Program-made: the position numbers and the translations under genes | Source: Octopus bimaculoides | Taxonomy: Eukaryota | Length of the DNA: 64,000 bases | Direction of reading: 5' to 3' | NCBI RefSeq assembly: GCF_001194135.2 | Contig: NC_068987.1 | Span: forward strand, 89,317,758 to 89,381,757 | Notes under the pieces: generated by a model | What the model saw: only the letters and a program-made list of their open reading frames with translations | The model's database searches: none | Told to the model about the DNA's origin: nothing | In this document: in pieces, positions 10,958 to 64,000 of the stretch | Position numbering within the stretch: position 1 is the stretch's first letter | Layout: every line of letters starts with the position of its first letter

Positions 10958-11866
10958 ATGGCAAAACTTGGATTTGCTGAAAATTTCGCTCTCAGTGGAG
11001 CAGCTGCTATTATATCCAAGACAGCCGCAGCTCCAATTGAACGAGTAAAGCTGCTGGTTCAAAATCAAGATGAAATGTTAAAGAGTGGTAGGCTGAAGGA
11101 GCCTTACAAGGGTGTAATTGACTGCACAATGAAGACCTTCAGGTCGGAGGGTATTTTACCATTCTGGCGTGGCAACTTGGCTAATTGCATCAGATATTTC
11201 CCAACCCAGGCTCTCAACTTTGCTTTCAAAGATCAGATCAAAATCATGTTTAAATCTAGTAAGGCAGATAGTTATACTTTGAAGTTTTCCAAGAATGTGG
11301 CATCAGGCGGTGTTGCTGGAGCTTTGTCCCTGTGCTTTGTCTATTCCCTCGATTATTGCCGAACCCGTTTAGCTAATGACGCCAAGAGCAGCAAAAAGGG
11401 TGGTGAGCGCCAATTCAACGGTATGGTCGACGTCTACCGCAAAACAATAGCATCTGATGGTGTTGCCGGACTTTACAGAGGTTTTGTGATCTCTTGTGTT
11501 GGAATCGTTGTCTACAGAGGGTGCTATTTCGGTTTCTATGACACCTTGAAACCAATCGTCATTGGTGACGAAGCCAGTCTCTTAATGTCCTTCGCACTTG
11601 GTTATATTGTAACCATCAGTGCTGGTCTTGTCTCTTATCCTATTGATACCATCAGGAGAAGAATGATGATGACATCCGGTGAAGCAGTCAAATATAGTGG
11701 ATCCATTGACTGTACGATGAAGATCGTCAAATCAGAAGGATTTATGTCATTGATGAAGGGTGCTGGTGCAAACATCCTCAGAGGTGTTGCCGGAGCTGGT
11801 GTCTTGTCAGGGTTTGATAAATTCAAAGAACTGTATGTGGCTTTCCGTATGGGTAGATCATCCTAA
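10958..11866 (+). CDS. AAC: Mitochondrial ADP/ATP carrier (adenine nucleotide translocase), 302 aa, intronless CDS
   Basis: [28 protein letters not shown] signature, three mitochondrial-carrier repeats; AATAAA at 12096 and 13142. Confidence 0.98.
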
Positions 11867-19853: not shown

Positions 19854-20482
19854 TCATTCAACTTTAGTTTGATCAGTTACCATTTCTTCCATACTTTCTG
19901 TCTCTTCCTCTGCATTTCCATTGGCAAGATTCTTCAATTTATGCATCTTTTGAATCTGCTGTTGTTTCTTTTTCTTAATCTCTTTCCATTTTTCTATGGC
20001 AACATTCCTTCTTGCAGAAAAATTATTTTTCCAAATCGTATGTTGTTCTTCCGTTTCACTGATTTCTTTCCTCAGTTGCTTCACACGATTTTCCCATTCA
20101 TCATCTTGGAACAGTGGGCTTTTTTTACCACTCTTGTCATTTTTGTTGTTGTTATTGCCAATTGTGTCATAAAGGTAGGACAAATCATCATCGTCTTCCT
20201 CTCTTCTCACTTTATCATCTGGTGTGTCTTCCAAAAGAGTTTTAATGTCATTGATATTGCTGTTGTGGTTATTACCATTATTTATGTTGTTATTACCATT
20301 ATTATTGTTGTTATTGTCACTGTTAGTGAAATTATCTTCACCACCTTCGACACCCAAGTCTTTTCCTTTAACATTACTGCTGTCATTATCATCATCTTGA
20401 AGTAATCCATTATCTTTATGGTCTATATTTGACCCTGACTCTGGAGATACATCATTCATTTCTGCCATAATAGAAGCCAAAT
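19854..20482 (-). CDS. Unrecognised Asn/Asp-rich protein with C-terminal coiled coil (single coding exon from ATG 20468, 204 aa, or last exon of a longer gene)
   Basis: 208-codon open frame; acceptor aacAG at 20484-20483; attATGG context at 20468; minus-strand AATAAA at 19743-19748; EWENRVKQLRKEISETEE heptads. Confidence 0.7.
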
Positions 20483-29276: not shown

Positions 29277-30155
29277 CAGGGTGCTATAGGTAAATTATTG
29301 CCATTTAATATTTTTAATTTCGCACATGTGCATTGTTTTTGATTTTGTCAATTACACAGTATGGTAGGGTCAGTTGGGCACTGTCTGTGAGTAAAACTGC
29401 ACAATAATGCAATTCATTCTGCCAGAAATTTGGAAATGGCATGCTGTACTGCTTGGCATTTGCACAAGAAGCTCCAATAGCAACAGATGGTGAATACTCA
29501 ACAACCGTTGGCCTGCTGTGTCCCCAAAACATGTACTGAGAGTGATAAAAATTAAACATCCAGTCAGCCTCATGGTGTTTGGAGTGATCACTAGTGATGG
29601 TGACGTCATGCCTCCATTTATCTTCCCACATGGCCTTAGACTCAACACAGAGGCCTACAACAAGTGCCTGGAGGAGGTAGTGTCCTGGATGAAGAGGGTG
29701 GCTGCTGGAAGACCCTGTGTCTGGCAACAGGACTCTGCACCATGCCACACAAACAGGAGAACCCAATCATGGGTGTCAGACAATTTCTGCAACCACATCA
29801 CCCCTAACATCTGGCCACCTACCTCCCCTGACTGCAACCCTCTTCATTATCATGTGTCCAGCACAGTTGAGTGAGACTCAAACAAAACTCCTTGTAACAC
29901 CAAAGATGAACTGAAGGCAAGGATTATGGCAGCATTCACCAACTTAAACAAGGAGATCATCCAGAAGAGTTGCAAGAGATTCCAAAGTCGTCTGGAGGCC
30001 ATGGTTGGAGCCAATGGTGATTGTATTGAATGAATTTACTCTTTAGTATTTCAAGATATTTTAAGTAATTTTGGTAAACATATCTGCTAAAATGAGATGT
30101 CAATGTTATTTTCATTTTTGCGTAATTTAGACAACAATATATTCACTGCATCCTG
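29277..30155 (+). mobile_element. Internally deleted Tc1/mariner transposon of maT (DD37D) type
   Basis: VMVFGVITSDG...WQQDSAPCH...WPPTSPDCNPL(H): 37 residues between the second D and the mutated third D; CAGGGTG-type termini. Confidence 0.85.
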
Positions 30156-47207: not shown

Positions 47208-48172
47208 TATTGGACCATTGGGTCTCAGGAATGTCTACATTATTTCATGTTTATTAGTATGTAGAATAACAAGATAACATATTTAGGCTAAACCAATGGC
47301 TTTTAGCAGTGACTTTTATGTCACATCAGTATATGGAAGAACAAAATATGGGGAGGAAACGTTTTGGCGCAGCCATTTTAGTGCTGGTTGATTTGATGCT
47401 TGCTTGTTTGACATCAGACTCTTTAATGTTTCCCTGCCTCCCTTTCTCCCTCTTTTATTATGTGTGTATTTAGTTATGTGTAATCTCTCTCTCCAATTGG
47501 TAGGTTAGTTGATGAAGTTGCCGTTTTAAGAAAACCGCTAATCTCTTATTTTGGTTTTGCAGTTTAAAAAGATTTTTTTTTTTTATGGTGACTTTTCCTA
47601 TGGTAAAATATCTTACAACAGTGTATATTTCTGTGCATGCACCTGTATTTGCTTCCAATACCAAACTGTACTTTCACCAAAACAGGTTGGATGTCCAGTC
47701 AACCATGCCAATTTGTTGGTGTCTTAACTGCTGTTGAGGTTTTTATCATCAAAAAGGCATGGCTGTGTGGTTTATTACTGGTTTCACAATCAGTCCACTG
47801 CACATCATGGGACATATCTTATTACACAGCCTCAAGTTGATCAAAACCTTGTAAATGAAATTTGTTAGTCAGAAATTATGGAGAAACTTGTTATAGAGGT
47901 TTTTTGTTCTTGGTTGGGTAGACTTACCCTGTCCACCATCACCTGGTGCATGAGAGTCTTTAGTGGTGTCCACTCTGTTGTAAGCATTAAGACCATGCTT
48001 CCCGTTTACCAATTACTTTCTTTTATTTTACCAGACTCCGAGACCTGAGAAAAGTCATGAATGATGCCTGACTAAGCGATTTATGAAATAAGCCTTATAT
48101 CTTAAAAATCTATAATTTTACTTAGAATTATTTTTTCTTTTCTTTTAAGTTCTATTTTAGTTACTTCTGAAA

Positions 48173-48356
48173 ATGGCTAAAGATAAAAAGAATAAAACTA
48201 CTGAAGGGTGTGCCGAGAAAGTTGAAGTAAATTTGAATTCTTCAGGGGTTAACAAAAAACCCCAAAAGAAAGAACAAAAAGGTCCTAAAGAGAGTAAGGT
48301 AAACGAAGCGCCATCTCAAGGGAAAGATAAGAACATCAATGCTGTACCAGCAACAG
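48173..48356 (+). CDS. Lys-rich protein, first coding exon (MAKDKKNKTTEG...NAVPAT)
   Basis: Acceptor ttttAG at 48160, ATG 48173, donor AG|GTAAAT at 48357, phase 1. Confidence 0.8.
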
Positions 48357-49141
48357 GTAAATATTCCATTGTTGATTTTGATTTACCAGTTTTCTATATA
48401 AAAAAAAAGGGACTGTTTTATTAATCATCATCATCATCGTTTAACGTCCACTTTCCATGCTAGCATGGGTTGGACGATTTGACTGAGGACTGGTGAACCG
48501 GATGGCTGCACCAGGCTTCAATCTGATCTGGCAGAGTTTCTACAGCTGGATGCCCTTCCTAACGCTAACTACTCCGAGAGTGTAGTGGGTGCTTTTATGT
48601 GCCACCTGCACAGGAGCCAGTTCAACGGCACTGGCAATGACCACGCTCAAATGTATTCTAACATGCCAGTAAGGCAACGCTGGTAACGATCACGCTCAAA
48701 TGGCGCTATTTACATGCAACTGGCATGGAAGCCAGACAGTTGCTCTAGCAATGATCACATTTGGATGGTGCTGTTAGTGCTCTGTTGATCGGATCAACTG
48801 GAACAGTTGTCATCATAACCAAAAGAGTACCAATGCGTTCACTTGTAAAAGATATGAATTCTTATGTTTTAGTTAGTGTAAGGTTTTTCTCATAACTGCA
48901 TTACATCACAGATTAGAAAAGGATGGTCATGCCTGGAATGCTTTTGTTATTTGTAATGTGTGCTACCTACTAGTAGCTATGCAAACTGGTCAGAGCTATG
49001 TCTAGCTAGGATCATTATAGAAACTGCTCATCTCTCAGTTGGTTTTCTGTTAATTGATTCAATTGATTTTTATTTTCTCTGCTGTATTATTTCACAGAAC
49101 TTGGTAACATTTTCTAATAAAAGGCTTTTTTTTTGTTTTAG

Positions 49142-49225
49142 ATGCAGAGAAGAAGAAGAAGCAGCAGAAGAAGAAACCGAATGGACTTAATGCAGAAGAC
49201 AGCAACAAACAAAATCATGTGGAAG
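49142..49225 (+). CDS. Lys-rich protein exon, 84 nt (DAEKKKKQQKKKPNGLNAEDSNKQNHVE)
   Basis: AG/GT boundaries, phase 1-1, frame open. Confidence 0.8.
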
Positions 49226-49283
49226 GTGTGTGTGATTCGGTTCTCTTGTTACTAACATAATTGTTCAGTTCTATATGTCCACA

Positions 49284-49510
49284 GGCATGTGGCGTAGTAC
49301 TTAAGAGCATGGGCTACTAACCCCAAGATTCCGAGTTCAATTCCAGGCAGTGATCTGAATAATAATAATATCGAAAAATACCTTAGGAATGAGAACCCAG
49401 GTTCAAAATTTCCCCAAGACACCTGATGAAGGCTGGAGGGTATATCAGCCGAAACGTTGTGTTAACAACAAACAAGATGAGGACAAATATCCATCAAATG
49501 TAAATAATGT
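49284..49510 (+). mobile_element. tRNA-headed SINE-like element with Penelope-type 3' region
   Basis: A box TGGCGTAGT near 49289, B box GAGTTCAATTCC 49333-49344, anticodon-like stem ggg-ctactaa-ccc; hammerhead downstream. Confidence 0.7.
49418..49463 (+). ncRNA. Minimal type I hammerhead ribozyme (Penelope type)
   Basis: Stem I GACAC/GTGTT; core CTGATGA(A); stem II GGCTG-gagggtatat-CAGCC; GAA-ACGT palindromic stem III; GUU cleavage triplet, cut after 49458. Confidence 0.75.
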
Positions 49511-49709
49511 GAATAATGAACATAATTGTTGGTATTAACATTTTTCTGTCCATTTTCAGAGTTAGCATGTAGTAGTGGTGGTTGTTTGACCTCAGTTCAA
49601 GCCTGGGTGATCAATGAGGGCTAACTTGGGGGCTAAACAGCAACAGTTGCTAACCCTTAAAAAAAGACTGTCCCGGTTTTCTTTTAAGGCTTTAGTAAAA
49701 CTACATTAA

Positions 49710-49929
49710 CCCTTTAGCATTAAACTGGCCATGTCATGCCCAAATATTTTGCTTGTTTGATGTTTAAACTGGCCAGATCTGGCCTCTCACATCAATCCTA
49801 CGATGTCATTCTAAAAATAAACAAATCACATCATTGAAATTTTGTAGCTACAAGATAATGCATGATTAATTCAAAACAAAATCAATAAATATGCATAACA
49901 TTTGGTAGAGTTATCTGAATGCTAAAGGG
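49710..49929. mobile_element. piggyBac-like MITE, second family (220 bp)
   Basis: TTAA-CCCTTTAGCAT...ATGCTAAAGGG-TTAA; relatives near 12790, 14160, 53185, 53610. Confidence 0.75.
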
Positions 49930-50138
49930 TTAATTCGTGGTCTTATATAATACAGTTTCATGTGCCCTGACAGATCACTAGCAGGTTGCATGACCACATA
50001 AGAGTCTCACTTGTTGACTCTTCGTAACCTAGGTTTATGCATCTCTTATACAGTTGACTAAAGTTTTTTTGTCATCTCATCTGTGACCATCATCATCATC
50101 ATCATCAAGCACAAACGTTTTTGTATTTTTCTTTGTAG

Positions 50139-50189
50139 GAAATGTGAAAGCAACAAAACAAAAGAAATCCGAAGAGAACGTGACTGGCG
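50139..50189 (+). CDS. Lys-rich protein exon, 51 nt (GNVKATKQKKSEENVTG)
   Basis: tttgtAG / GTAGGT, phase 1-1. Confidence 0.8.
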
Positions 50190-50396
50190 GTAGGTGACTT
50201 TAACCATTCAAATATATGATTGGGAGTTTTTGTGAATAGGTGCAGGAGTGGTTACACAGTTAAGAAGCTCACTTTGCAACCACGTGGTTTCAGGTTCAGT
50301 CCCACTGTGTAGAACCTTTAGCCCCAGGCTGACCAATACTCCATGCAAATTTGATTGAAAGAAACTGAAAGAAAGTTGTGTGTGGTGTGTGTATGT

Positions 50397-50435
<39 letters not shown>

Positions 50436-50439
50436 AAGC

Positions 50440-50793
50440 AAACAGAAAATGGAGAAGTACTGATTAATAGCAATTGACTTACATCAATTATTTAAATTCA
50501 ATACAAATAGACTGCATCCCATCTAACAGCTGTTTCTGCTTCCAGTGTGATATGGCATTGCCATTGATATTCAAAATATGTAAAAAATATTAATCATATT
50601 TGGTGATAAAACCGATCAGAAACAAGGAGCTTCGTATGATTAATATTTTTACATATTTTGAATATCAATGGCAAAACCATATAACATTGGAAGCAGAAAC
50701 AGCTGTTAGATGGGATACAGTCTATTTGTATTAAAAAGTAATAGTTAATGTTAGTCAATTGTTGTTCATCAATATTTCTCCATTTTCTTGTTT
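50440..50793. mobile_element. Foldback element with about 155-bp arms
   Basis: e.g. catcccatctaacagctgtttctgcttcca versus tggaagcagaaacagctgttagatgggat. Confidence 0.75.
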
Positions 50794-50968
50794 TTTTTAA
50801 ATTTTGATTCTTGATAAACTTATGTTTATCCTTGTCTTTACTTGTAATTTTATGAGCATGATATGTTTGCATATGTATGCCCAGGGTTAAACATAGGTAA
50901 TATACTGGTAGTGTAATGGATACTTCTATCCCTTAGACAGTTATTTTTAACCTCTAACTCAACTAACC

Positions 50969-51006
<38 letters not shown>

Positions 51007-51055
51007 TGTAAGAATTTACTGTGATTAAGGCTGCATGACATTTGATTATAAATAA

Positions 51056-51316
51056 ATAAAATAAAAAATACACATTGTGTACAGGACATCACCAATGAGT
51101 GAAAAATATATAAATGCAGGAGAGAAAAGTACAGGACAAAGTACCAAAAGAAGATAACTCACACGTCAGTTATTAGACAAGTAATAAACAGTCCGACAAC
51201 TGATGAGGGAGTCATCTTCTTTTGCATTTTCTCCTGTACTCTTCTCTCATGTGTTTATGTATTTTTCACTTGTTGTTGATGTCCTGTACATAATGTATAT
51301 TTTTTAAATTTTATTT
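51056..51316. mobile_element. Foldback element
   Basis: tacacattgtgtacaggacatca versus tgatgtcctgtacataatgta; aaaagaagataactc versus gagtcatcttctttt. Confidence 0.7.
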
Positions 51317-51317
51317 A

Positions 51318-51709
51318 CCGTAAATCCTCAAGTATAGTCCGCCCTTGAGTATAATATGCAGGGGATTTTTAGGGAGCTGTACCTCTGAAAAACCTAAACC
51401 TTGTGTATAATACGCACCTCTTCTCTAACTTGAGTCAAGGAGGTCTATATAACGTCCTTTATTATTATTGTGTATATAACATAATGCAAACGTGTAGCTT
51501 TTTTGTGCACTTTGTTTGCAGAAAATAAAGAAATAACAGTAATAACATCAGTGAAAAATAAATATTAAGTAAATTGCCTTTACATATTTATCACTTAGAA
51601 AATTTTGCTTAGAAAATATTTTCCAGTTTTAATCTCGTATATAGTACACACTAGAAATTTTGACCAGTAAATTTTTGGAAAAATGTGTGGATTATACTCG
51701 AGAATTTAC

Positions 51710-51711
<2 letters not shown>
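51318..51711. mobile_element. Tc1/pogo-like MITE with TA TSD
   Basis: TA-CCGTAAATCCTCAAGTATA ... TATACTCGAGAATTTACGG-TA. Confidence 0.8.
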
Positions 51712-51779
<68 letters not shown>

Positions 51780-51781
<2 letters not shown>

Positions 51782-52430
51782 GGGTGTTCAGGCCAAATTT
51801 GACAGTTTACGTAAAAATAAGAGAAAACACAAAATCTCATCCACAGATAAAAGTATTTTAAAAAATCAAAAAAAATATCGACTAAGTTATGGCTGAGAGA
51901 TAACAGCTTATTCAGAAGCTGCCCTCAACTTCCACCACGGCCGGTTCAGAAATCTGGTGCATGCATTTCTCACTCTGTGCCTGGGAAGATATTCAAACAC
52001 TTCCTTGATCTTGGCTACCAGCAGGCAGAGTGATTGGTGTTTTTCTCAACCATGCCCCACACATAGTAATCAATGGGATTGCAATCAGAGTAATTAGGAG
52101 GCAAGAAACAGGGGAGTGTGAAGCCTTAGAAATTCTCCAACAACCACTTCTGACTCTTTCCAGAGGTAATGCAAGGAGCCACACATATGGCCTTCCAGCA
52201 GCAACCCTCTCCAGGTCAGGGGTTGACCACAATCTCCAGCAGATGGACATAATGGTCTGAATTGAGCCTAAGACTGTGTTCAAAGATGTGGAGATGAATT
52301 CCATCGTTTGGGTACAGTTAGAACACCTGCTGTGTCCCTTCCTGCTGCCCATGGCTTCATAGTCGCTGTTGCAGCAATCTCTGTCATGTCTTTCAGCCTT
52401 TACAGTGTCCGCAGAGCATTGAGCAGCAGT
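51780..52430 (-). mobile_element. Second maT-like transposon relic
   Basis: Minus strand PPNYSDCNPIDYYVWGMVEKNTN and RVAAGRPYVW; CAGGGTG terminus at 51780. Confidence 0.7.
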
Positions 52431-53108
52431 CATCCTCATCATTTAACATCTATTTTCCATGCTGGTATGGGTTGGACAGTTTGACTGGAGCTGACAAAGC
52501 CAGGAGCTACACCTGGTTCCGTTGTCTGTTTGGGCATGATTTCTGCAGCTGGATGGCCTTCCTAATGCCAACCACTTTATAGAGTGTATTGGGTACTTTT
52601 TATGTGGCTCCAGTAGTAGCAGGGTCACCAAGTTCCTTGCAATTGGGAGTTGGAGAAGTAGAATTAAGTGGCTGTGGCTTGGTGCCAGTTGAGAGATTTA
52701 AGGTATAGAAGGTACAGATATAGGTGTCTTGCTGCAGAGTAGATTCTTGGACACCCCAGTTGGGAAATAAAGGAGAGTGATAGTGAGAGAGATGATGGTG
52801 GGGATGTTTTGGGACATGCCCTCAAGGGACATTGAGGATGGCAAAGATAGGGGAGGTGATATAGAAACTTGGGCTGGGGTGTGGGCAGGATGAAGTGACT
52901 GTAGTAAATGATGGAGAGAACTATAGGAGAGGCTTGGGGGCAGGGGTTGCAGTACATATGTAAGGACATTGAGGGTGGTAGCAAAAAAGTGAAGAGTGGA
53001 TGACAGAGAACAGTCAGATGGTAAATAACATGTCCAGAGAAATATTGCTTTCATTCATTTAAGATAATAATACTATTATTATTATTATTAATTTCAATAT
53101 TATTGTAG

Positions 53109-53144
53109 AGCTTACTAAAAAGAAAACACAGAAGCAGCAGAAAG
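53109..53144 (+). CDS. Cassette exon A1, 36 nt (ELTKKKTQKQQK)
   Basis: attgtAG / GTAAGA, phase 1-1. Confidence 0.8.
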
Positions 53145-54035
53145 GTAAGAATTTTTAATGTTTTCTTTTATGAGTCGCTCATTTTAACCCTCTAGCATTT
53201 AAACCGGCCAGATCCAGCCTCTCACATCTATCCTACAATGTCAATCTTAAAACAAACAATCACATCGTTGAAATCTTGAAGCTACGAGACATAGCAAAGC
53301 ATTACATTCGACAGAATCACCTGAATGGGTAGCCTCTCCTTTCCGTAGCTGCTTTTGGAAATTGGTCTCAAGAAAAATCTATTAAGATAACATAGAATTT
53401 GGTGTTGCTGAAGGAAAGCCTGAAAAATGAACCATTCAAAAGAAGTCTTGTTACTATTATCAGAAATAAGTCTATCAAGTTTCTGGAAGTGTGTTTTAGA
53501 TTCTGGTATCAATGTCAGATTATCCTATCGGAATAGGCTACAGATTATCCTATCAGAATAGGATAATCTGTAGCCACAGAGAAGAGGATATGCACATTCA
53601 CCAAATCTTGACCCTTTAGTATTTAAACCAGCCATATCTGGCCAAAATATTTGACTTGTTTTATGTTCAAACCAGCCAGATCTGGCCTCTTGCACCTACT
53701 CTACAATGTCATTTCAAAAATAAACAATCACATCATTGAAGTCTCAAAGCTATGGAGATAATGCGTAATCTAAAACAATGTGAATAAATAAACATTACAT
53801 TTAACAGAATAGTCAAATGCTAAAGGATTAAAGCTATAATGCTACAGAGCTGATGCTTAATAAGATCAGTAGGCCTTTGTAGTCCCATGTCTTTTGGAAT
53901 GTAATAGAAAGTCTGTCATTATTATTTTGTAATTTACGTCAGATATTTGTCAGGCTCATTCATAACTAATTGAAGCCATTGTGCCATAATAACAATTGGT
54001 TTTATGCTATAAATATGTTTTTTTTTCTCTTTCAG

Positions 54036-54080
54036 AAGAAACTCCTACACCAAAGACTGGGCAAAACAATGCTTTGAAAG
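54036..54080 (+). CDS. Cassette exon B1, 45 nt (EETPTPKTGQNNALK)
   Basis: tttcAG / GTAAAC, phase 1-1. Confidence 0.8.
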
Positions 54081-54233
54081 GTAAACAATTTTTGTTGTTG
54101 TTAGATAGTTTTAAATGTTAATGTTGCTTCTACATGTTAATGTTGCTTCTACATGTGTGCCTAATTAACACAAACATCTTTGATGCAACATCTTCCACAT
54201 TTTAGTGTTTTCTTTGTTATTTTTCCTTTATAG

Positions 54234-54299
54234 AAAATGGGAAAAATAAGAAACATAATACCAGTGGAGGAAATGTGACAGATGGATCTGCTGGAGAAG
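54234..54299 (+). CDS. Cassette exon C1, 66 nt (ENGKNKKHNTSGGNVTDGSAGE)
   Basis: tttatAG / GTAG, phase 1-1. Confidence 0.8.
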
Positions 54300-56224
54300 G
54301 TAGNNNNNNNNNNNNNNNNNNNNNNNNNNNNNNNNNNNNNNNNNNNNNNNNNNNNNNNNNNNNNNNNNNNNNNNNNNNNNNNNNNNNNNNNNNNNNNNNN
54401 NNNNNNNNNNNNNNNNNNNNNNNNNNNNNNNNNNNNNNNNNNNNNNNNNNNNNNNNNNNNNNNNNNNNNNNNNNNNNNNNNNNNNNNNNNNNNNNNNNNN
54501 NNNNNNNNNNNNNNNNNNNNNNNNNNNNNNNNNNNNNNNNNNNNNNNNNNNNNNNNNNNNNNNNNNNNNNNNNNNNNNNNNNNNNNNNNNNNNNNNNNNN
54601 NNNNNNNNNNNNNNNNNNNNNNNNNNNNNNNNNNNNNNNNNNNNNNNNNNNNNNNNNNNNNNNNNNNNNNNNNNNNNNNNNNNNNNNNNNNNNNNNNNNN
54701 NNNNNNNNNNNNNNNNNNNNNNNNNNNNNNNNNNNNNNNNNNNNNNNNNNNNNNNNNNNNNNNNNNNNNNNNNNNNNNNNNNNNNNNNNNNNNNNNNNNN
54801 NNNNNNNNNNNNNNNNNNNNNNNNNNNNNNNNNNNNNNNNNNNNNNCTGGGATCGATTTGCTCGACTAAAAAAGGTGGTGCTCCAGCATGGTCGCAGTCA
54901 AATGATTGAAACAAGTAAAAGAATAAAAATCCTCCCCCATTCCAGAACCAATTCTATTCCCCCTCATCTTCCTCCATCCCTCTGCTCTTTCCCCTCTCCT
55001 ATACTCAAGCCTTAACACCTCCTTTATTCCCTCATCTCTCCTAATGCCACCCCCCCGAACCACTCCTATTTCTCCCACTATCAATTACTAGTCATCTCTG
55101 TTTCCTCTATCAATCTCTCCTCACATTTTTATGAGGCTTCCCCCACCTGTCCACTCACCCACTCCAGTCCTCTGTATTCCCTTCGGCTCTGTACCTCGAG
55201 GGTGTGTCCTAATACACATCCATCACCCTCTCTATCTTTCTCTTAGCCTTTCTCTCTATCCCTGATTCTCCAACTGGGCTATCCTTGTAGATAGGTGCCT
55301 TGTAACAAGGCACCTATTACTATCCCTCTGTTATTCTTTTAACTTCTCATCAACTGGATGGAAAATGGACGTTAGATGATGGTGATGATGATTTTCTGAG
55401 AAATATCAGACTGAGAACGGTTGGTTAAATTCTGTCATGACATCATAAAGTACAAATTAAATTGAGAATTGATGAAAAAACTCACTAAAGACACCTTAGA
55501 CATTCACTTGGGGCTAAATTGTATAACGTGTTTATTTTGTATAAAGAATACAACATATTAATTCTTTTGTTACCAACCCAGCTGAAACTGGCTCTGGCTC
55601 TGTAGAACAAATGTTTTGTTTTCGTAAGTTCTGAATTAAAATCTTCCACCAAACCCTAGTCACAATTTATGTTCCTGACACTAGTTTAATGATAACAAAG
55701 TTATTTTGCTAAATTCTCTGTTATATTTAAAATTAATTGAAAGAAACACAGAGCATCTCAGCAAAAGTATGGTAACAAAAGGGTTAATAAATGAGTAATT
55801 TAACCCTTTTGATGCCAATCTGGCTGAAACCAACTCTGGCTCTGTAGTACAAATGTCTTGTTTTCATAAGTTCTGAATTAAAATCTTCCACCAAACCTTA
55901 GTCACAATTTATGTTCCTAACACTTAGCTTAATGCCAACTAAGTTATTTTTACTAAATTCTTTATTATATTTAAAATTAATTGAACGAAACACAGAGCAT
56001 CTCAACAGAAAAACAGTAATGAAAGGGTTAAGATCCACTGAAATTCTCAGCCATGCGATCTCCTTACTGCTGCTCTGGGAATATTTATCAACAAACTGTT
56101 TAGTGTGGGAAAAAACATTTATCATCATCATGTTGCTTCTACATGTGTGCCTGATTAGCACAAGCATATTTAATGCAACAGCTTCCATATTTTGCTGTTT
56201 TCTTTTGTTGTTTTTCCTTTATAG

Positions 56225-56271
56225 AAAATTGGGAAAAATAAGAAACATAATAGCAGTGAAGGAAATGTGAT
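56225..56271 (+). pseudogene. Dead copy of cassette exon C (pseudo-exon)
   Basis: Same upstream intron as C1/C3, but a +1 T insertion (aaaattggg) and truncation by (CA)n before the donor. Confidence 0.7.
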
Positions 56272-56954
56272 ACACACACACACGCACATACACACACACA
56301 CATACATGACAGGTTCATGTTTCTTTTTTTTATTTATGTGCAAATTAACGTTTGTGTACGTGGTGTTCCCATGCAGATAACTAACGCAAGGGAGGATAAT
56401 CATTCCTTCAACGTCTTTGGCGGAATTAGAAGATGGAATCAGAAATTTGGCATTAAGGAAAATGATGCATTGGATGTGAATATTTATTTGATTTGTTGGT
56501 TACTTGATGTGAAATAATGTTCATATGAGTTGTTAGAATCTTTCTGAATTGCTCGTTATCATTTGTACACGTGTTGCTAACGATCATTGTAGACTAAGTC
56601 AGTCAACAAATAAACTTCATGCTAGACATTCTTGAGGCTTTGCAATGTTGTGATAGAACATCTCTGTTTTTTTTTTTTTTTTTGTTATTAGCGTTCAACT
56701 CAATCACTATGTCTGCATCAAATTTTTCATGGAATTTGGTAAGATCTGCTACCAAGATCCTGTTCCGTTATTTCTTTTGTTTGAACCTGGTGAAGCCTCC
56801 TGGCTTGCCAGTCCCCAGTCAAACTGTCCAACCCATGCCAGCATGGAAAACGGACATTAAAAGATGATGATGATGATGATGATGATGATTGTCTTATGCA
56901 ATCCCATACTGTGTCATCCTGTGCCTTCCTAGAACTTTTTTGTCAGTCATTGTG

Positions 56955-56986
<32 letters not shown>

Positions 56987-57010
56987 GATTTAATTTCAAT
57001 ATCATTGTAG

Positions 57011-57049
57011 AACCTGTTAAGAAGAAGAAAAAGCATAAGCAACAGAAAG
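57011..57049 (+). CDS. Cassette exon A2, 39 nt (EPVKKKKKHKQQK)
   Basis: attgtAG / GTAAGG; exon B2 is expected inside the gap 57906-58470. Confidence 0.8.
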
Positions 57050-58573
57050 GTAAGGTTTTCTTCTCTGTCTAATTTCATATCCTTTCATATTCATAATTGC
57101 TTTTGAAAATTAACTTCATCTGATATTTGGGTCTCGGAATATATCTAATGAGTTCACAAATGGAGTTTGCTGCAGTTAAAGTGGAACAAATGATTGAATA
57201 CATAAAAAAAATCGATTTTTATTAGTTTACAGTTGTCAGAAATGAGTTTGTTGCTTGTGGGTTGAGAGTGTCAGTATTTCTGGATCCAATTGGCAATTAG
57301 TTTGCTGAAAGCTGCATATAATAACTAGACAACACCGAACAAACATGTAAACAGGATTTGTTATACCACACTTGTCATAGAAAAGATGTTCACGTGTCAT
57401 CATATATATTTAGGATCAACAAGATGAAAATAGTGTAATACAACATGCTAAAAACTGTCTTCCCAAAATTTAACACTGGGACTGGTTCTAGTTTTAACAC
57501 AATGAATAACATAATGAATGTGTGTGTGTGTGTGTGTGTGTGGTGTCATGTCTAAAAGGAGTGTGTATTCATAATGTACTCAAGAACATGCTGAATTTGG
57601 TGCTGAAAAGGACTAAATTATTTTACTAAATTCTTTGTTATATTTAAAGTAATTGAAAGAAACACAGAGCATCTTAAAATAAATACAGTAATGAAAGGGA
57701 TAAGGAAACTTCTAGAGCAATCCGGAGAAGCTGTCTTGTGAACACTAAGCCACCGATTGGGCAAAAGTTTGGCTGCACACCTGATCAAACCATTGCTGTG
57801 TCATGACATGAAATTCATAATATGGCAATGCAAGTTCACATCCTGCTACCAGTTCATCTACAATTTGTAAGAGATTGTTTTAGATTTTGTTAGCTGAATG
57901 TATTANNNNNNNNNNNNNNNNNNNNNNNNNNNNNNNNNNNNNNNNNNNNNNNNNNNNNNNNNNNNNNNNNNNNNNNNNNNNNNNNNNNNNNNNNNNNNNN
58001 NNNNNNNNNNNNNNNNNNNNNNNNNNNNNNNNNNNNNNNNNNNNNNNNNNNNNNNNNNNNNNNNNNNNNNNNNNNNNNNNNNNNNNNNNNNNNNNNNNNN
58101 NNNNNNNNNNNNNNNNNNNNNNNNNNNNNNNNNNNNNNNNNNNNNNNNNNNNNNNNNNNNNNNNNNNNNNNNNNNNNNNNNNNNNNNNNNNNNNNNNNNN
58201 NNNNNNNNNNNNNNNNNNNNNNNNNNNNNNNNNNNNNNNNNNNNNNNNNNNNNNNNNNNNNNNNNNNNNNNNNNNNNNNNNNNNNNNNNNNNNNNNNNNN
58301 NNNNNNNNNNNNNNNNNNNNNNNNNNNNNNNNNNNNNNNNNNNNNNNNNNNNNNNNNNNNNNNNNNNNNNNNNNNNNNNNNNNNNNNNNNNNNNNNNNNN
58401 NNNNNNNNNNNNNNNNNNNNNNNNNNNNNNNNNNNNNNNNNNNNNNNNNNNNNNNNNNNNNNNNNNNNNNTTTCTATTAAATATCTTTAAATATTAACAT
58501 TTGAAGCATTTGTGTCTAAATACCAGAAACATCTTTGGTATAACTATTTTCCGTCTTTTATTTTCCTTTATAG

Positions 58574-58639
58574 AAAATGGTAAAAAGAAGAAATCCAATA
58601 ACGGCGGAGAAAATTTGCCAAATGGATCTGCTGGAGAAG
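58574..58639 (+). CDS. Cassette exon C2, 66 nt (ENGKKKKSNNGGENLPNGSAGE)
   Basis: tttatAG / GTAGAA. Confidence 0.8.
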
Positions 58640-59392
58640 GTAGAAAACTTATTGAAATATTTTGTTGCTGTTTTAGAATTTTGATTTAGAATACATTAAA
58701 AGAAAAATATCAAATCAAAAACTCTAGATAAATTGTAGTTATCATTAAGATGGCCTTCATTTTATATATCGTTAAGTAAGAGCCAGCTCTCTCTGCAACA
58801 TTTGACCTCTTGTTACTCTTTCTATATCTTAAGGTCAGAAGGCAGTCCTCAATTTCTAGGGCAAAGAGCACTTCTCTTACATGAGATTAATGGTATTATG
58901 TTACTTTCTGATGATATATTTGTGAGAGGCAGCTCTACAGCAATATGTGAAAGTATCTGATGGTATAGTTAGACAACTTGTCCAGTGAAATACGTTTTCC
59001 TTTAAAACAACAAAATAGCAAAGGCAGAGAGCTTCTTACAATGCAAAAAGAAAAAGTTTATGTATTTCAGGCACAACAACCCATCATCAGAAGTGAATGG
59101 AGTAAAGAAATGTGAATATGTGTAGAACCATTCATGTTGATTGTTGAGTGCAGACGGGTTGGTACTGTATTGACTCACATTTCTTGACTACATTTACTAC
59201 TGACAATGGGCCTTTACACCTGAAATATATAAAGTTTAATGAACTTGTCCCTTTTAGCATTGTAAAAAGCTCTCTCTCTTCATTATTCTGTTATTCTACT
59301 TCTTTATCATATTGCTTCAAACTGGATGTCCTGCTCTTCTTTCTTAGTTTTGTTTATTTATTATATTATTTCTCATTTCAATATCATTGTAG

Positions 59393-59431
59393 AACCTGTT
59401 AAAAAGAAGAAAAAACATAAGCAACAGAAAG
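59393..59431 (+). CDS. Cassette exon A3, 39 nt (EPVKKKKKHKQQK)
   Basis: attgtAG / GTGAGA. Confidence 0.8.
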
Positions 59432-59978
59432 GTGAGATTGCTCTTCCCTTTCTAATTTGATGTCTGCTACCTTAAATGTTTGCATGTTTTTTTCACACCT
59501 ATTATGAGTTTGTACGGTTTGCTGCAGTTGATGAGAAAGATTTAAAAAAAAAAAGAAACTCAAATTTTTGTTTGGTTACGATTATCAGAAATGAGCTCAT
59601 CTATAATTTCTGAGAAGTAGTTTTAGATTTTCTTATCTAACTGTAATCGGATTTCATCTGAATATGGATCTTGCTCACAGCATATAAGAGAAGGACCTGC
59701 ACACTCAGGAAAATGCTAGCCCCAACATCTCTCAAACATTGCTGAGATTTAATAAGCAACAACTGATGAACATTCTGTAAATCATTGTAGTCTTGTATTT
59801 TGCACAAAATAATAGAAAGCTACAACAAATTTTTTTTACATATTTCATTTGTTGGTTACCAATGAAATACTGTCTGGTTATAATTCTGTTCATTTATAAC
59901 TAACTGAAGCCATTGTGCCATAATAACAATTGTGTTAATTGGTTTTATGCTATAAATATGTTTTTTTTTCTTTTTCAG

Positions 59979-60026
59979 AAGAAACAACTCCTACACCAAA
60001 GACTGGGCAAAACAATGCTTTGAAAG
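59979..60026 (+). CDS. Cassette exon B3, 48 nt (EETTPTPKTGQNNALK)
   Basis: tttcAG / GTAAAG. Confidence 0.8.
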
Positions 60027-60163
60027 GTAAAGTTTTTTTCTTGTTGTTGTTAGATAATTTTAAATGTTAATGTTGCTTCTACATGTGTGCCTGATTAGCA
60101 CAAACATCTTTGATGCAACATGTTCCACATTTTAGTATTTTCTTTGTTATTTTTCCTTTATAG

Positions 60164-60229
60164 AAAATGGGAAAAATAAGAAACATAATATCAGTGGAGG
60201 AATTGTGACAGATGGATCTGCTGGAGAAG
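60164..60229 (+). CDS. Cassette exon C3, 66 nt (ENGKNKKHNISGGIVTDGSAGE)
   Basis: tttatAG / GTAGAA. Confidence 0.8.
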
Positions 60230-61855
60230 GTAGAATAATATTTAGCTACTGAAATATATATTGCTGCTTTAGAATTTTAATTAAAAGAAAAAATACGGCA
60301 AAATAAAAGCTCTAAAAAGTTGCTAAAAGTTATCATTAAACTAGCCTACAATTTGAATACCTTCAGGTAAATTGTATTTGATCCATCTGTGATCTGTCAG
60401 CTATCAAATAGTGTTTGATTTTTATTATGAAATGGTCCAAAGCATTCTCTTATTTGGTTTAATCACTTGTCTATCAGCCAGATTTTCATTTTAAACCTTC
60501 TTTCACTTTTCTGTGCTAACGTGTGTGTGTGTGTATCACAATATTGTCGCAAGGTTTAGTTTTTTTTCTCATCTCATCTTTACACAAGGCACAAAGACAC
60601 ACACACACATAGAGTAGTTCTAGAGGGAGCTTTTGGGGAATATTTATAAACAAATTTCAGTATTCATTCTACATATTGCAAACATATTTTTAATGTAATT
60701 TTCCCATATGTATTATAAGCTGGTGGTGAGGGACACAAAAACTAACAGAAATGCGATGACTAGATCTGATAGCTTATTCTCTGTTGCCTCTTCAGCTCCC
60801 TGTGGAACTTTTTGACCCATGAACATGTCTTTGATTCCTTTCACTTTGTCCTCTACAATCTTCAGGTACACTTTCCATTTTCTTTCAAAGGTTGCTGAGA
60901 GGGTTCTCAGCTTTTTCTCATTCCTAGAAGATTAGCAATCTCTAAGGATCATTAAACACTGAGTTCTAATCCTTGATATGAGAAGGGGCTCCAGCCTCTC
61001 TAGTACTGCTTTAATCTGTGAATGTCCTCACTCTTCCTTTACTCTAAATAAGTGGACATCCTTTTGCTTTCTGTGGTTTTCTTAGCAAGAAATGTTTCTG
61101 TGCTGTAGATCTGTTAATTCTATGAAGAAGCGCCAGCCTAAAGGATTTGGCCTGTGTTTAGCAGCCTTTTTAATATTCTGCCCACAAACAAGTTATTGGT
61201 GTTATTTTTTTAAATGTCTGAGAGAGCAGCATACCTAGATGTGGAGATTCTGATGGCAAAGGTTCTGAGATTCTGATGGCAAATGTTCTAAACTTGTTCA
61301 GTGAATGTCCATTTTCCATCCTGACATGTGTTGGTCTGACAGGAGCCAACAAGCCAGAGGACTGCACCAAGCTCCATTGTCTGTTTTTGCATCGTTTCTA
61401 CAGCTGGATCCCTTCCTAACGCCAACCACTTCCCAGAATGTACTGACTGCTTTTTATGTGAGGTCACCAAGTAATTTCCAAGACAAGATCCTCCATCAAC
61501 TGAGGGAGGAGTAAATTTGAGGGATGTGGCTTTATGCCAGAAGGTGGGAGGTGATTTTCTTCAGCAAGAAAGTGTGCCTGAAATGCCATCAATTACAGGA
61601 CATTAACCACTAAGTGTTGTTTCTTTCTTTAAACCTTTCTGTTGCAATAAACTGCTTTTGTTACAGTTAATTTTGAAAATAAGAAGAATTTGTCAAGGGA
61701 TTGTCAATGGAGTTCCAATCAACCATAGGTTGGTCAAAGGATGATGATGAGCGGTTAAAGTCTGAGAGGGGGACAGGAAGCAGGTGTTTTGCTGTAGGGA
61801 AGTGTATTGTTTTATATTTGTTTATAATAATATTTAAATTTCAATATCATTGCAG

Positions 61856-61894
61856 AGCCTGTCAACAAGAAGAAAAAGCACAAGCACCAAAAAG
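61856..61894 (+). CDS. Cassette exon A4, 39 nt (EPVNKKKKHKHQK)
   Basis: attgcAG / GTAGGG. Confidence 0.8.
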
Positions 61895-62524
61895 GTAGGG
61901 TTTTATTCTTTCTTAAATTCTATCCTCTTTCATGATTCTGACCATTCAATTAGCATATTAAAGTTATATATGGTTTTTTTTGTTTTCATGTTTATTTTTT
62001 GTTCTTTTGGATATTAGCTCAACCGATATTTTGGTCTCAAAAAACAAATCTAATGAAATCATTATTGGTTTGCTGCAGCTGAAGGGAAAAAAAATGATTC
62101 AATGTTTGTTTGGTTACCATTGTCAGAAATGAGTCCATCTTCAGTTTCTGAAAAGTTGTTTCAGATTTTGATTTCTGAATGTAAGAGAAATTCCATCTGA
62201 ATATGGTAACAGGCACTGAGAGGAGGAGATGCACACTCACCAAGATTATGGCCTCAGCAGCATCTTTAACGCTACATTGCAACAGCACCGAGGCTTAGTA
62301 AGCAGTGATTGGTGAGCATTTTGTAAAATATTGTAGTCTCGTGTGCTGTGGATTGTAATGCAGTGTAGGAACAGACCCGACATATTCAGTTTGTAGGTGA
62401 CCAAATTAAATATTTGTCTGGCTCTAGTTCTGCTTGTTTGCAGATGGCTGAATCTAGTGTTCCATGGCAATAATTGTGATAATTGGTGGTTTTATGCTAT
62501 AAATAAGTTTCTTTTCTGTTTCAG

Positions 62525-62581
62525 AAGAAACAACAACTACAGCAAAAGCTGGGCAAAACAACACCTCATCAGCTCCAAAAG
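62525..62581 (+). CDS. Cassette exon B4, 57 nt (EETTTTAKAGQNNTSSAPK)
   Basis: tttcAG / GTAAAC. Confidence 0.8.
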
Positions 62582-62697
62582 GTAAACAGTTTTATTTCTA
62601 TTAAATAACTTTAAATATTAACATTTGAAGCATTTGTGTCTAAATACCAGAAACGTCTTTGGTATAACTATTTTCCATCTTTTATTTTCCTTTGTAG

Positions 62698-62763
62698 AAA
62701 ATGGTAAAAAGAAGAAATCCAATAACAGCGGAGAAAATTTGCCAAATGGATCTGCTGGAGAAG
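62698..62763 (+). CDS. Cassette exon C4, 66 nt (ENGKKKKSNNSGENLPNGSAGE)
   Basis: tttgtAG / GTAGAA. Confidence 0.8.
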
Positions 62764-63442
62764 GTAGAAAACTTAGTTATTGGAATATTTTGTTGGTTTT
62801 AGAATTTTGATTTAGAAATACATTACAAGAAAAATATCAAACCAAAAGCTTTAATAAATTAATGAAGTTATCGTTAAGCCTTTAATTTGTGTCAAATAGT
62901 CACTCATCTGTCACCAAACACTACAAGTCATCATCTCATTTGATATGTCCTTGAATCATTTCTGTATCTACAAAAATTTCAGTGATTTAATGTTCATCCT
63001 GAGTTGTCAAATTGCATGGAATTGACTAACTTAGAAACAGCAAAGTATTTTATTGGGGACTTTTGCCATTTATCGCTTTGTATGAGGTTGAGTATATTTC
63101 GTACTGCTTCTGTGTTTAGTGAAGCTACTGATGGGTAGGTTAGATATTCTAACTCTTCCACAGTTAAAAACAAAGAAACATTAATTATTCATGGTTCTTA
63201 ATTTCAGTTCTCGAAGATTGCGTAAATAGTTTTAATGATAATTCTTCTTCCTCTATTTACTGTCAGACAAAAGTTACTAATCTGTTTTCCGTTTGTAAAA
63301 ATGCTAGATTTATTCATTCAAAGGAAACAATGAATCATAAACACCAAGAAATAGTTCAGATCATTTTCAATGTTATCAACCTAACGATCCTAAGCATCTT
63401 TGATCTACTTCAATATTTTACTATTTTCTATGATTTGTACAG

Positions 63443-63499
63443 ATAGTGCAAAAAAGAGGAAACGCAAGATCAGTGAAGAAAATGTGAAAAGTGGTGATG
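63443..63499 (+). CDS. Lys-rich protein exon, 57 nt (DSAKKRKRKISEENVKSGD); the gene continues beyond the window
   Basis: gtacAG / GTAGGT, phase 1-1; KKRKRK is NLS-like. Confidence 0.75.
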
Positions 63500-64000
63500 G
63501 TAGGTTACTTGTTCATTGGAATAATTTGCTGGCATTGTTTAACTATACTCTTGTATAATTTAATATACTGAAACACTGGACGCGGTCAAGGAAATTGACT
63601 GGAAGAAAGCTATTTTAGCCTTGGATTGCCGTACCTAACCTACCACATTCTCACATTAAATAAGCAAAGTGTAAAAAGTAAAAAACAGGAATTTTATATT
63701 ATGGCTTTTAAGTGTTGATTTCTCAGCCCAAGAATTACAGCGTGATGTGCTGCTTGACTGGTCCCCCCTCTCTCTCTCTCTCTCTCTTTATATATATATA
63801 TGATGATGATGATGATGATCTTTTCTCCCGCCATGCCTCTGTCTACCCCTCCATCCTCTCTCTCCCCTTCGTAGTTTTTCCTTAAGGTCTTCAGGTTCTG
63901 GCTATATATAAATGAGAAACCTATTCTAAATTATCTCGCTGACGTACTACGACGAAATACCCAAGATGCAGATAAGATAGAGATTTTTTATTTATTTACG

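Follow-up and report, generated by a model that had tools for sequence, protein, structure and literature searches.

Why should the lysine-rich beginning of a small protein be cut into a long series of micro-exons, many of them belonging to a unit of three exons that recurs along the gene? The question is raised by a gene in Octopus bimaculoides NC_068987.1:89,317,758-89,381,757 (forward strand; assembly GCF_001194135.2), a stretch of 64,000 nt that was analyzed as a whole and is called the window here; positions are those of the window unless a locus handle precedes them. As judged by orthology and collinearity with Octopus vulgaris, the region is the 5′ two-thirds of the octopus ortholog of the WKF-domain gene family, to which human C7orf50 and yeast Rbp95 belong. 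We consider it probable that this gene carries a disordered basic N-terminus laid out in duplicated, skippable micro-exon cassettes, and that the choice of exons shifts the number of basic patches in its product.

Exon anatomy and repeat architecture

A first-pass annotation, made from the letters alone, had listed 15 coding exons. With borders checked by script after positions 48000-64000 had been read, that list was reproduced exactly in coordinates, lengths, phases, and borders (Table 1). All 15 are bordered by AG and GT and have pyrimidine-rich acceptors; all 14 downstream of the first coding exon (E1) have a length that is a multiple of 3, between 36 and 84 nt, and are of phase 1-1, and the joined frame runs for 314 residues with zero stops. 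Because the micro-exons are phase 1-1, any of them can be omitted without a frameshift, and the 314-residue product, which supposes that every visible exon is included, should not be mistaken for a real isoform. The exon pattern alone is not statistically remarkable, since 278 of 806 AG..GT segments of 36-84 nt with a length divisible by 3 are open in phase 1 by chance in this A-rich region; hence the weight has to come from outside evidence. Such evidence exists for 12 of the 15 visible exons (not C2, C3, and E15), which correspond to exons that annotated O. vulgaris proteins use with canonical junctions. The candidate exon E15 is identical to its O. vulgaris ortholog at 55 of 57 nt.

Downstream of E3 the exons form an array. 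The four A-B-C cassettes of the first-pass annotation stand, with four A exons, four intact C exons, and four B exons, of which three are visible and one is placed in an assembly gap; what it had missed is a fifth, truncated C copy (pseudo-C) and the alternation of two subtypes. In the pseudo-C, 1 nt has been inserted (AAAATTGGG) and a (CA)n run stands in place of the 3′ end and the donor; no A or B exon relic of this fifth cassette was found in either species. The B and C exons follow one another along the gene as I, psi-I, II, I, II, where type I (cassettes 1, psi, and 3) has a B exon reading TPTPKTGQNNALK and a C exon reading NGKNKKHN..GGNVTDGSAGE, and type II (cassettes 2 and 4) has TTTTAKAGQNNTSSAPK and NGKKKKSNNSGENLPNGSAGE, respectively. 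As expected of internal tandem duplication, the paralogous exons align along with introns: cassettes 3 and 4 are 68% identical over about 810 nt, introns included, and B-C modules of the same type are 87-97% identical, again with the intron. The earlier claim of homologous introns thus holds strongly for the B-C module, and around the A exons it holds for only about 80 nt.

Two assembly gaps interrupt the array, both within introns as judged by collinearity, and neither can break the frame because all the exons are symmetric in phase 1-1. Gap 1 leaves only GTAG readable of the C1 donor region. Its flanks map collinearly to positions 27506 and 27984 of the O. vulgaris locus (L001), an interval of 478 nt as against 567 nt between the window anchors; no cassette-like exon was found in that O. 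vulgaris interval, which contains an element resembling a short interspersed element (SINE). Gap 2 lies where the first-pass annotation had supposed the B exon of cassette 2 to be hidden, and the supposition is supported by O. vulgaris: the flanks map to L001 31254 and 31871 (617 nt versus 565 N), and exon B2 of that species sits within the interval at L001 31801-31857, with 57 nt, AG/GT borders, and the sequence EETTTTAKAGQNNTSSASK. In the window, a type II B2 of about 57 nt should accordingly lie near 58400-58457. Since position 58471 aligns to 62595, 14 nt past the end of B4, B2 would end within the gap, about 13 nt short of its right edge. Gene models at this locus need that concealed 57-nt exon.

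Table 1. Exons, relics, and assembly gaps of the window gene, with the corresponding features in other species. L001 is the O. vulgaris locus; L002 to L004 are the loci of more distant relatives; P0001 to P0005 are annotated O. vulgaris isoforms.
Feature	Location	Strand	Length, phase	Sequence	Remarks
E1, first coding exon	48173-48356	+	184 nt, 0-1		ATG at 48173
E1 ortholog, O. vulgaris	L001 18836-19016				in P0001, P0002, P0004, P0005
E2	49142-49225	+	84 nt, 1-1	DAEKKKKQQKKKPNGL...	all five O. vulgaris isoforms
E3	50139-50189	+	51 nt, 1-1	GNVKATKQKKSEENVTG	all five O. vulgaris isoforms
A1, basic exon	53109-53144	+	36 nt	ELTKKKTQKQQK	all five O. vulgaris isoforms
B1, type I	54036-54080	+	45 nt	EETPTPKTGQNNALK	all five O. 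vulgaris isoforms
C1, type I	54234-54299	+	66 nt	ENGKNKKHNTSGGNVTDGSAGE	in P0001, P0002; skipped in P0003, P0004, P0005
Assembly gap 1	54304-54846	.			intronic; starts 4 nt past C1 donor GT
Fifth-cassette relic	56117-56270	+			type I B-C intron and pseudo-C (~56226-56270)
A2	57011-57049	+	39 nt	EPVKKKKKHKQQK	ortholog in P0001, P0003, P0004
Assembly gap 2	57906-58470	.	565 N		should hold B2
C2, type II	58574-58639	+	66 nt	ENGKKKKSNNGGENLPNGSAGE	intact in window
A3	59393-59431	+	39 nt	EPVKKKKKHKQQK	ortholog in P0002, P0003
B3, type I	59979-60026	+	48 nt	EETTPTPKTGQNNALK	ortholog in P0002, P0003
C3, type I	60164-60229	+	66 nt	ENGKNKKHNISGGIVTDGSAGE	intact in window; candidate expressed exon
A4	61856-61894	+	39 nt	EPVNKKKKHKHQK	ortholog in P0002, P0003, P0005
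B4, type II	62525-62581	+	57 nt	EETTTTAKAGQNNTSSAPK	
C4, type II	62698-62763	+	66 nt	ENGKKKKSNNSGENLPNGSAGE	all five O. vulgaris isoforms
E15, candidate exon	63443-63499	+	57 nt	DSAKKRKRKISEENVKSGD	AG/GT and open phase-1 frame in both species
WKF exons, O. vulgaris	L001 43844-44046, 44603-44750, ~48288-48340				
Single-exon N-terminus, Mactra (bivalve)	L002 7134-7820				
Single-exon N-terminus, Owenia (annelid)	L003 1001-1408				
Single-exon N-terminus, Nematostella (sea anemone)	L004 1001-2410				

Family identity and composition

When the 314 residues were used as a protein query, the only significant matches were five O. vulgaris isoforms, each named "WKF domain-containing protein," 71-80% identical, 320-426 aa long, and all encoded on a single chromosome. 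The WKF domain (PF10180, formerly DUF2373) occupies residues 273-334 of isoform P0002 (E 3.2e-22; 78.6 bits against a cut-off of 25); a Pfam scan of the window's own 314 residues gave zero matches. The O. vulgaris locus (OX597820.1:115790105-115848447) is gap-free and comes from a chromosome-level assembly. Window positions 36000-63684 are collinear with L001 4300-37881, at 85-93% identity over about 27 kb, introns included, and every window exon has an ortholog there in the same order, with AG/GT borders kept except in the decayed C exons that are described below. By this synteny, the three WKF exons are expected about 7 kb beyond the window (C4 of O. vulgaris is at L001 36745), and the domain that the first-pass annotation expected to be sought beyond position 64000 would be the C-terminal WKF of the O. 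vulgaris ortholog. Downstream of the O. vulgaris locus is the TMEM237 gene. With the C-terminal 114 residues of the ortholog as query, an exhaustive HMMER search found 880 relatives, among them bivalve, annelid, and cnidarian members and one named "C7orf50 homolog." PDB sequence searches with the full ortholog and with those 114 residues gave no match even at E <= 10, and an Rfam scan of the window gave nothing at gathering score.

What is known of the family bears on what the N-terminus might do. In yeast, Rbp95 (Ycr016w) is an early pre-60S factor on helix H95 of 25S rRNA, and it binds RNA through both its WKF part and residues 1-85, the latter more strongly (PMC9508819). Human C7orf50 resides in the granular component of the nucleolus and is required for ribosome biogenesis; its N-terminus holds a nuclear localization signal (NLS) and a nucleolar localization signal (NoLS), and acetylation of the NoLS lysines leads to its release from the nucleolus (PMC13178565). 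The guess that the window gene's product is "probably nucleolar or nucleic-acid-binding" is therefore in keeping with its family, since the ortholog ends in WKF and both C7orf50 and Rbp95 are nucleolar and RNA-binding. As in C7orf50 with its NLS and NoLS, the N-terminus read from the window is basic and lysine-rich, with clusters of NLS/NoLS type.

The composition agrees with the disordered lysine-rich N-terminus that had been proposed. The 314 residues include 76 K (24%), 38 N (12%), 33 E (10.5%), and 30 G (9.6%), with only 26 hydrophobic residues (8%) and a net charge of +37, and the start of the protein, MAKDKKNKTTEG (MAKDKKNK...), is hydrophilic and not like a signal peptide. Each A exon contributes a charge of +4 to +6, and the charge of the B and C exons is near zero. 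The 14 positions that match K[KR]x[KR] fall mostly in the A exons, the C exons, and E15. In outline, the A exon is a basic patch (KKKKKHK), the B exon a neutral T/P/Q/N spacer, and the C exon a KKKK patch followed by a G/S/N spacer. An AlphaFold single-sequence model of the ortholog, of low confidence (mean predicted local distance difference test score, 45), has no secondary structure before residue 264.

Exon skipping in O. vulgaris

That exons can be skipped in frame had been suggested from their phases, and at the level of annotation it is observed in O. vulgaris, where the five proteins decompose exactly into exon peptides and differ in cassette-exon content, namely in C1, cassette 2, A3/B3, and A4. 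P0001 consists of E1-E3, A1 B1 C1, A2, a B exon that is either B2 or B4, and C4, and P0004 is the same protein minus C1. P0002 has E1-E3, A1 B1 C1, A3 B3, and A4 B4 C4, and P0005 is shorter, with E1-E3, A1 B1, and A4 B4 C4, so that B1 is joined straight to A4. P0003 has an upstream alternative first exon and then A1 B1, A2, a fused B2-C2, A3 B3, and A4 B4 C4. Orthologs of C3 and E15 are absent from all five. In the O. vulgaris annotation, splice variants were supplied by PASA on the basis of Iso-Seq and RNA-seq, and the mean is 1.36 transcripts per gene (PMC10700109); with five protein isoforms, this gene is thus well above average. The C exons have weak GTAGAA donors and the A exons have the weakest pyrimidine tracts, both of which fit skippable exons. 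Rbfox-type TGCATG motifs near the cassette exons were considered as a splicing signal and dropped, as 6 were counted against about 3 expected and none was consistently placed.

P0003 is the odd member of the set. Its fused B2-C2 is probably an artefact or else a work-around for the frameshift in the C2 exon of O. vulgaris, where an exon of 65 nt (L001 31975-32039) has lost 1 nt from a run of A. That deletion may be a real change or a homopolymer assembly error, and it probably explains the odd junction. The far-upstream first exon of P0003 is spliced to an acceptor, TTCTTCAG, inside E1, a motif that is also present in E1 of the window (48230-48250), and the 62-residue peptide that P0003 has upstream of it looks like a spurious open reading frame (ORF).

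History of the array

Comparison of the two octopus species dates the array. The flanks of the A exons group strictly by orthology (91-94% identity between orthologs, 50-64% between paralogs), and hence the four-cassette array predates the split between the window species and O. vulgaris. For the B-C modules the grouping is reversed. Orthologs are 92-94% identical, and each module is nearer to its paralog in the same species: 95.9% for C1/C3 and 96.6% for C2/C4 in the window, 99.3% and 100%, respectively, in O. vulgaris, where cassettes 2 and 4 are 96.7% identical over 737 nt. Paralogs that are closer than orthologs imply gene conversion after the split. The truncation of the pseudo-C, by contrast, is the same in O. 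vulgaris (L001 29180-29226), and its loss is accordingly older than the split. Other changes are confined to O. vulgaris. In addition to the deletion in C2, the C3 exon (L001 34158-34211) has lost its final 12 nt and its donor and is used in no isoform, and A4 is reduced to 33 nt by an in-frame deletion of 6 nt; C2, C3, and A4 are all intact in the window.

The array shows no sign of present growth; what came later was gene conversion and the decay of exons. The view of the first-pass annotation, that the N-terminus is growing by exon-cassette duplication, is supported as to the process, in that exons and introns of the copies align, with the qualification that the four-cassette layout predates the split. 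The comparison of cassette number with a second Octopus species, which it had proposed, gave the same copies in the same order.

Coding constraint and competing explanations

Between the window and O. vulgaris, the Nei-Gojobori method counts 25 synonymous changes over 156 sites and 23 non-synonymous changes over 639 sites, for an overall ratio of non-synonymous to synonymous rates (dN/dS) of 0.205 (Fisher p = 2e-7), with the lowest value, 0.145, in the cassette exons. This method inflates dS where transitions prevail, and the expectation was therefore derived anew from the intron substitution spectrum of the locus. Expected were 15.1 synonymous changes, 42.7 non-synonymous changes, and 3.0 stops, and observed were 25, 23, and 0, so that non-synonymous changes stand at 50% of expectation (omega about 0.33; binomial p = 2e-4). 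Indels within used exons are all multiples of three. We read these figures as moderate purifying selection (omega about 0.2-0.33), as expected of a disordered region constrained in composition.

In the history that we favor, a three-exon module was multiplied by tandem genomic duplication to at least five copies of two alternating subtypes before the species split; after it, the A parts diverged orthologously and the B-C parts were homogenized within each species by gene conversion. Individual C exons died, as in the shared pseudo-C and in C2 and C3 of O. vulgaris. Basic "stickers," either of NLS/NoLS type or making non-specific contact with RNA, could then be supplied by every A exon and by the KKKK that opens every C exon, as C7orf50 and Rbp95 suggest, with the remaining B and C sequence as spacers. 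Exon choice would set the number of stickers and, through it, might set nuclear or nucleolar retention or the affinity for pre-rRNA. A stronger version is conceivable, in which regulated tissue- or stage-specific combinations of the conversion-homogenized modules make up a splice-controlled dial for nucleolar-targeting or RNA-binding patches, perhaps themselves targets of acetylation. We regard this version as speculative and rather unlikely. Raised conservation of exons or of exon flanks over deep intron, a hallmark of regulated exons, was not seen.

Several observations weigh against the reading of the locus as a WKF-family gene with a splice-variable, disordered N-terminus. Its WKF domain is outside the window, and membership in the family comes via orthology to O. 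vulgaris. The isoforms also come from O. vulgaris rather than from the window's species; E15 and C3 are candidate exons that the annotated isoforms lack, and the B2-C2 junction of P0003 is non-canonical and falls at a CAATA[A/C]C microhomology, so that not every annotated variant is trustworthy. The AlphaFold model is of low confidence throughout and is weak evidence for disorder. Exon identity (93.6%) is not above that of introns at any distance from the exons (92.6-94.6%), and the constraint appears only in the split between synonymous and non-synonymous changes. Finally, the two dead C exons of O. vulgaris and the shared pseudo-C fit neutral turnover equally well. The last two points are the core of the most serious rival explanation, according to which a disordered region that tolerates change acquired the array as a side effect of tandem duplication, the number of exons means nothing for function, and the skipped isoforms reflect noisy splicing at weak sites. 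The weak donors of the C exons and the weak pyrimidine tracts of the A exons can be read in this way, as can the N-terminus across the family, which varies freely in length and sequence, that of the octopus lacking significant similarity even to the closest non-octopus relative. A wholly neutral array should not, however, have non-synonymous changes at half the neutral expectation and its lowest dN/dS in the cassette exons themselves, nor should the indels of used exons all be in frame or the splice sites of the 12 visible exons with canonical O. vulgaris use be kept in both species. We judge neutral turnover to be the less likely account, with a chance that is still appreciable. It is, moreover, partly compatible with our own: it disputes the purpose and not the anatomy, and for copy number it is plausible.

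Other alternatives concern the data themselves. If the exons were constitutive, the skipping annotated in O. vulgaris might reflect mis-mapping or template switching during reverse transcription between near-identical repeats. Assignment is indeed ambiguous where B2/B4 are 98.9% and C2/C4 100% identical, and the non-canonical junction of P0003 falls at a microhomology. The other isoforms do not fit such an origin. P0001 and P0004 differ by C1 only, and where they meet the neighbors B1 and A2 are dissimilar; in P0005, A4 follows B1 with no exon between them; apart from that of P0003, all junctions are canonical exon borders; and the isoforms are shorter than full inclusion under any assignment of repeat copies. 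An artefact of this kind is, in our estimate, quite improbable. More radically, the exons could be no more than chance AG..GT open segments in A-rich DNA, for which the 278 of 806 might be cited, or the copies could be artefacts of an assembly that is, after all, a gapped draft. This has a negligible probability and can be set aside: annotated O. vulgaris proteins contain the peptides of the orthologous exons, the independent gap-free chromosome-level locus of that species is collinear and has the same copies in the same order, and the coding constraint is present. The exon anatomy, orthology, duplication history, and constraint, together with the cassette-variable O. vulgaris isoforms, are shown by these data, and the WKF-family gene with a basic-patch number that varies with exon choice is the reading that we prefer. 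Should isoform choice prove to be under regulation, one could ask in this tractable system how basic-patch number sets the nucleolar partitioning of a ribosome-biogenesis factor.

Other features of the window

The intron between E3 and A1 contains a minus-strand ORF with a "VAAGRPxVW" motif (51993-52442), a transposase remnant; the block around it (51767-53013) is 90.6% conserved with L001 24424-25668. A similar transposase remnant, with a weak DDE_3 match, is found at 29518-29874 on the plus strand. The SINE-like element is about 190 nt long, begins ATCATCATC...GTTTAACGTCCACTTTCCATGCTAGCATGGGTTGGACG, and occurs in both orientations, dispersed over the window and within the gene's introns in both species, with copies at 48424-48650, 52430-52606, and 61304-61460, at more than 10 further window sites, and at many in L001. 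Upstream of the gene, an ORF of 302 aa at 10958-11866 (plus strand) has three mitochondrial-carrier repeats (Pfam Mito_carr, E 1.8e-67) and is like an ADP/ATP translocase; it is intronless and may be a retrogene or a single-exon gene. A minus-strand ORF of 208 aa at 19854-20480 is N/D/E-rich and has no Pfam match, and it could be a large exon or a chance low-complexity ORF.

Relation to known systems

Set beside its own family, the octopus gene is conventional at one end and aberrant at the other. Like C7orf50 and Rbp95, the O. vulgaris ortholog combines a C-terminal WKF with a basic N-terminus, and it agrees with bivalve and annelid members in its three final coding exons and in where their introns fall. 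In Mactra (locus mapped by tblastn), Owenia, and Nematostella, a single exon encodes the whole basic N-terminus and the first half of the WKF; in Mactra and Owenia two more exons follow, at intron positions that match the last octopus introns. In the octopus, unlike these relatives, the N-terminus is spread over at least 14 phase-1 micro-exons and about 25 kb, with a repeated three-exon module. Since the N-terminus is a single exon in bivalve, annelid, and cnidarian alike, the micro-exon array is derived in the octopus or the wider cephalopod lineage. The closest non-octopus relative (P0006), encoded on a contig of transcript length, is 60% identical in the WKF region and has a basic N-terminus of 200 residues without cassettes, to which the octopus N-terminus shows no significant similarity (E = 0.15). 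The Nematostella WKF protein (524 aa) is entered in the database as "DEAD-box ATP-dependent RNA helicase 42," apparently a wrong name that arose from low-complexity similarity.

Among nucleolar disordered proteins, those of the Treacle (TCOF1) and Nopp140 type have repeat units that are single exons and are variably spliced, with acidic serine-rich stretches (CK2 sites) alternating with basic ones. The octopus gene shares with them the disordered repeat units that match exons and, in the O. vulgaris annotation, the variable splicing. It differs in its three-exon unit and in being a small protein with a WKF domain; acidic serine runs are absent from the 314 residues, and its B and C exons are neutral and rich in T/P/Q/N/G.

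The micro-exon genes (MEGs) of schistosomes are an obvious comparison as well. Most of their coding sequence is in very short exons of a length divisible by 3, and variants arise by skipping (10.1101/2023.06.21.545858); the octopus gene resembles them in both respects, the skipping being that annotated in O. vulgaris. MEG exons measure 3-81 nt, against 36-84 nt for the octopus micro-exons, and MEG products are secreted and lineage-restricted, whereas the octopus gene has no N-terminus like a signal peptide. A MEG would have a signal peptide and no conserved domain; the octopus ortholog, with neither trait, ends in a WKF domain that is conserved from fungi to animals.

The nearest parallel is a general one. 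In human genes, disordered regions have been described that are encoded by symmetric exons, which were multiplied by tandem duplication within the gene and undergo alternative splicing (Schad, Kalmar & Tompa 2013, PMC3632108). The octopus locus conforms in its symmetric exons, its disorder-type composition, its internal tandem duplication, and, at the level of the O. vulgaris annotation, its alternative splicing; it departs in being a cephalopod gene whose relatives lack the pattern, and in its alternating subtypes, gene conversion of part of the unit, and exon death. The symmetric-exon rule (PMC3632108), the WKF family, and the annotated O. vulgaris isoforms were already known; particular to this locus are the contrast to relatives with a single exon and the conversion of only part of the repeated unit. 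With three-exon duplication, partial-unit conversion, exon death, and in-frame skipping in one gene, the locus offers a clean and datable example of how a disordered tail is remodeled.

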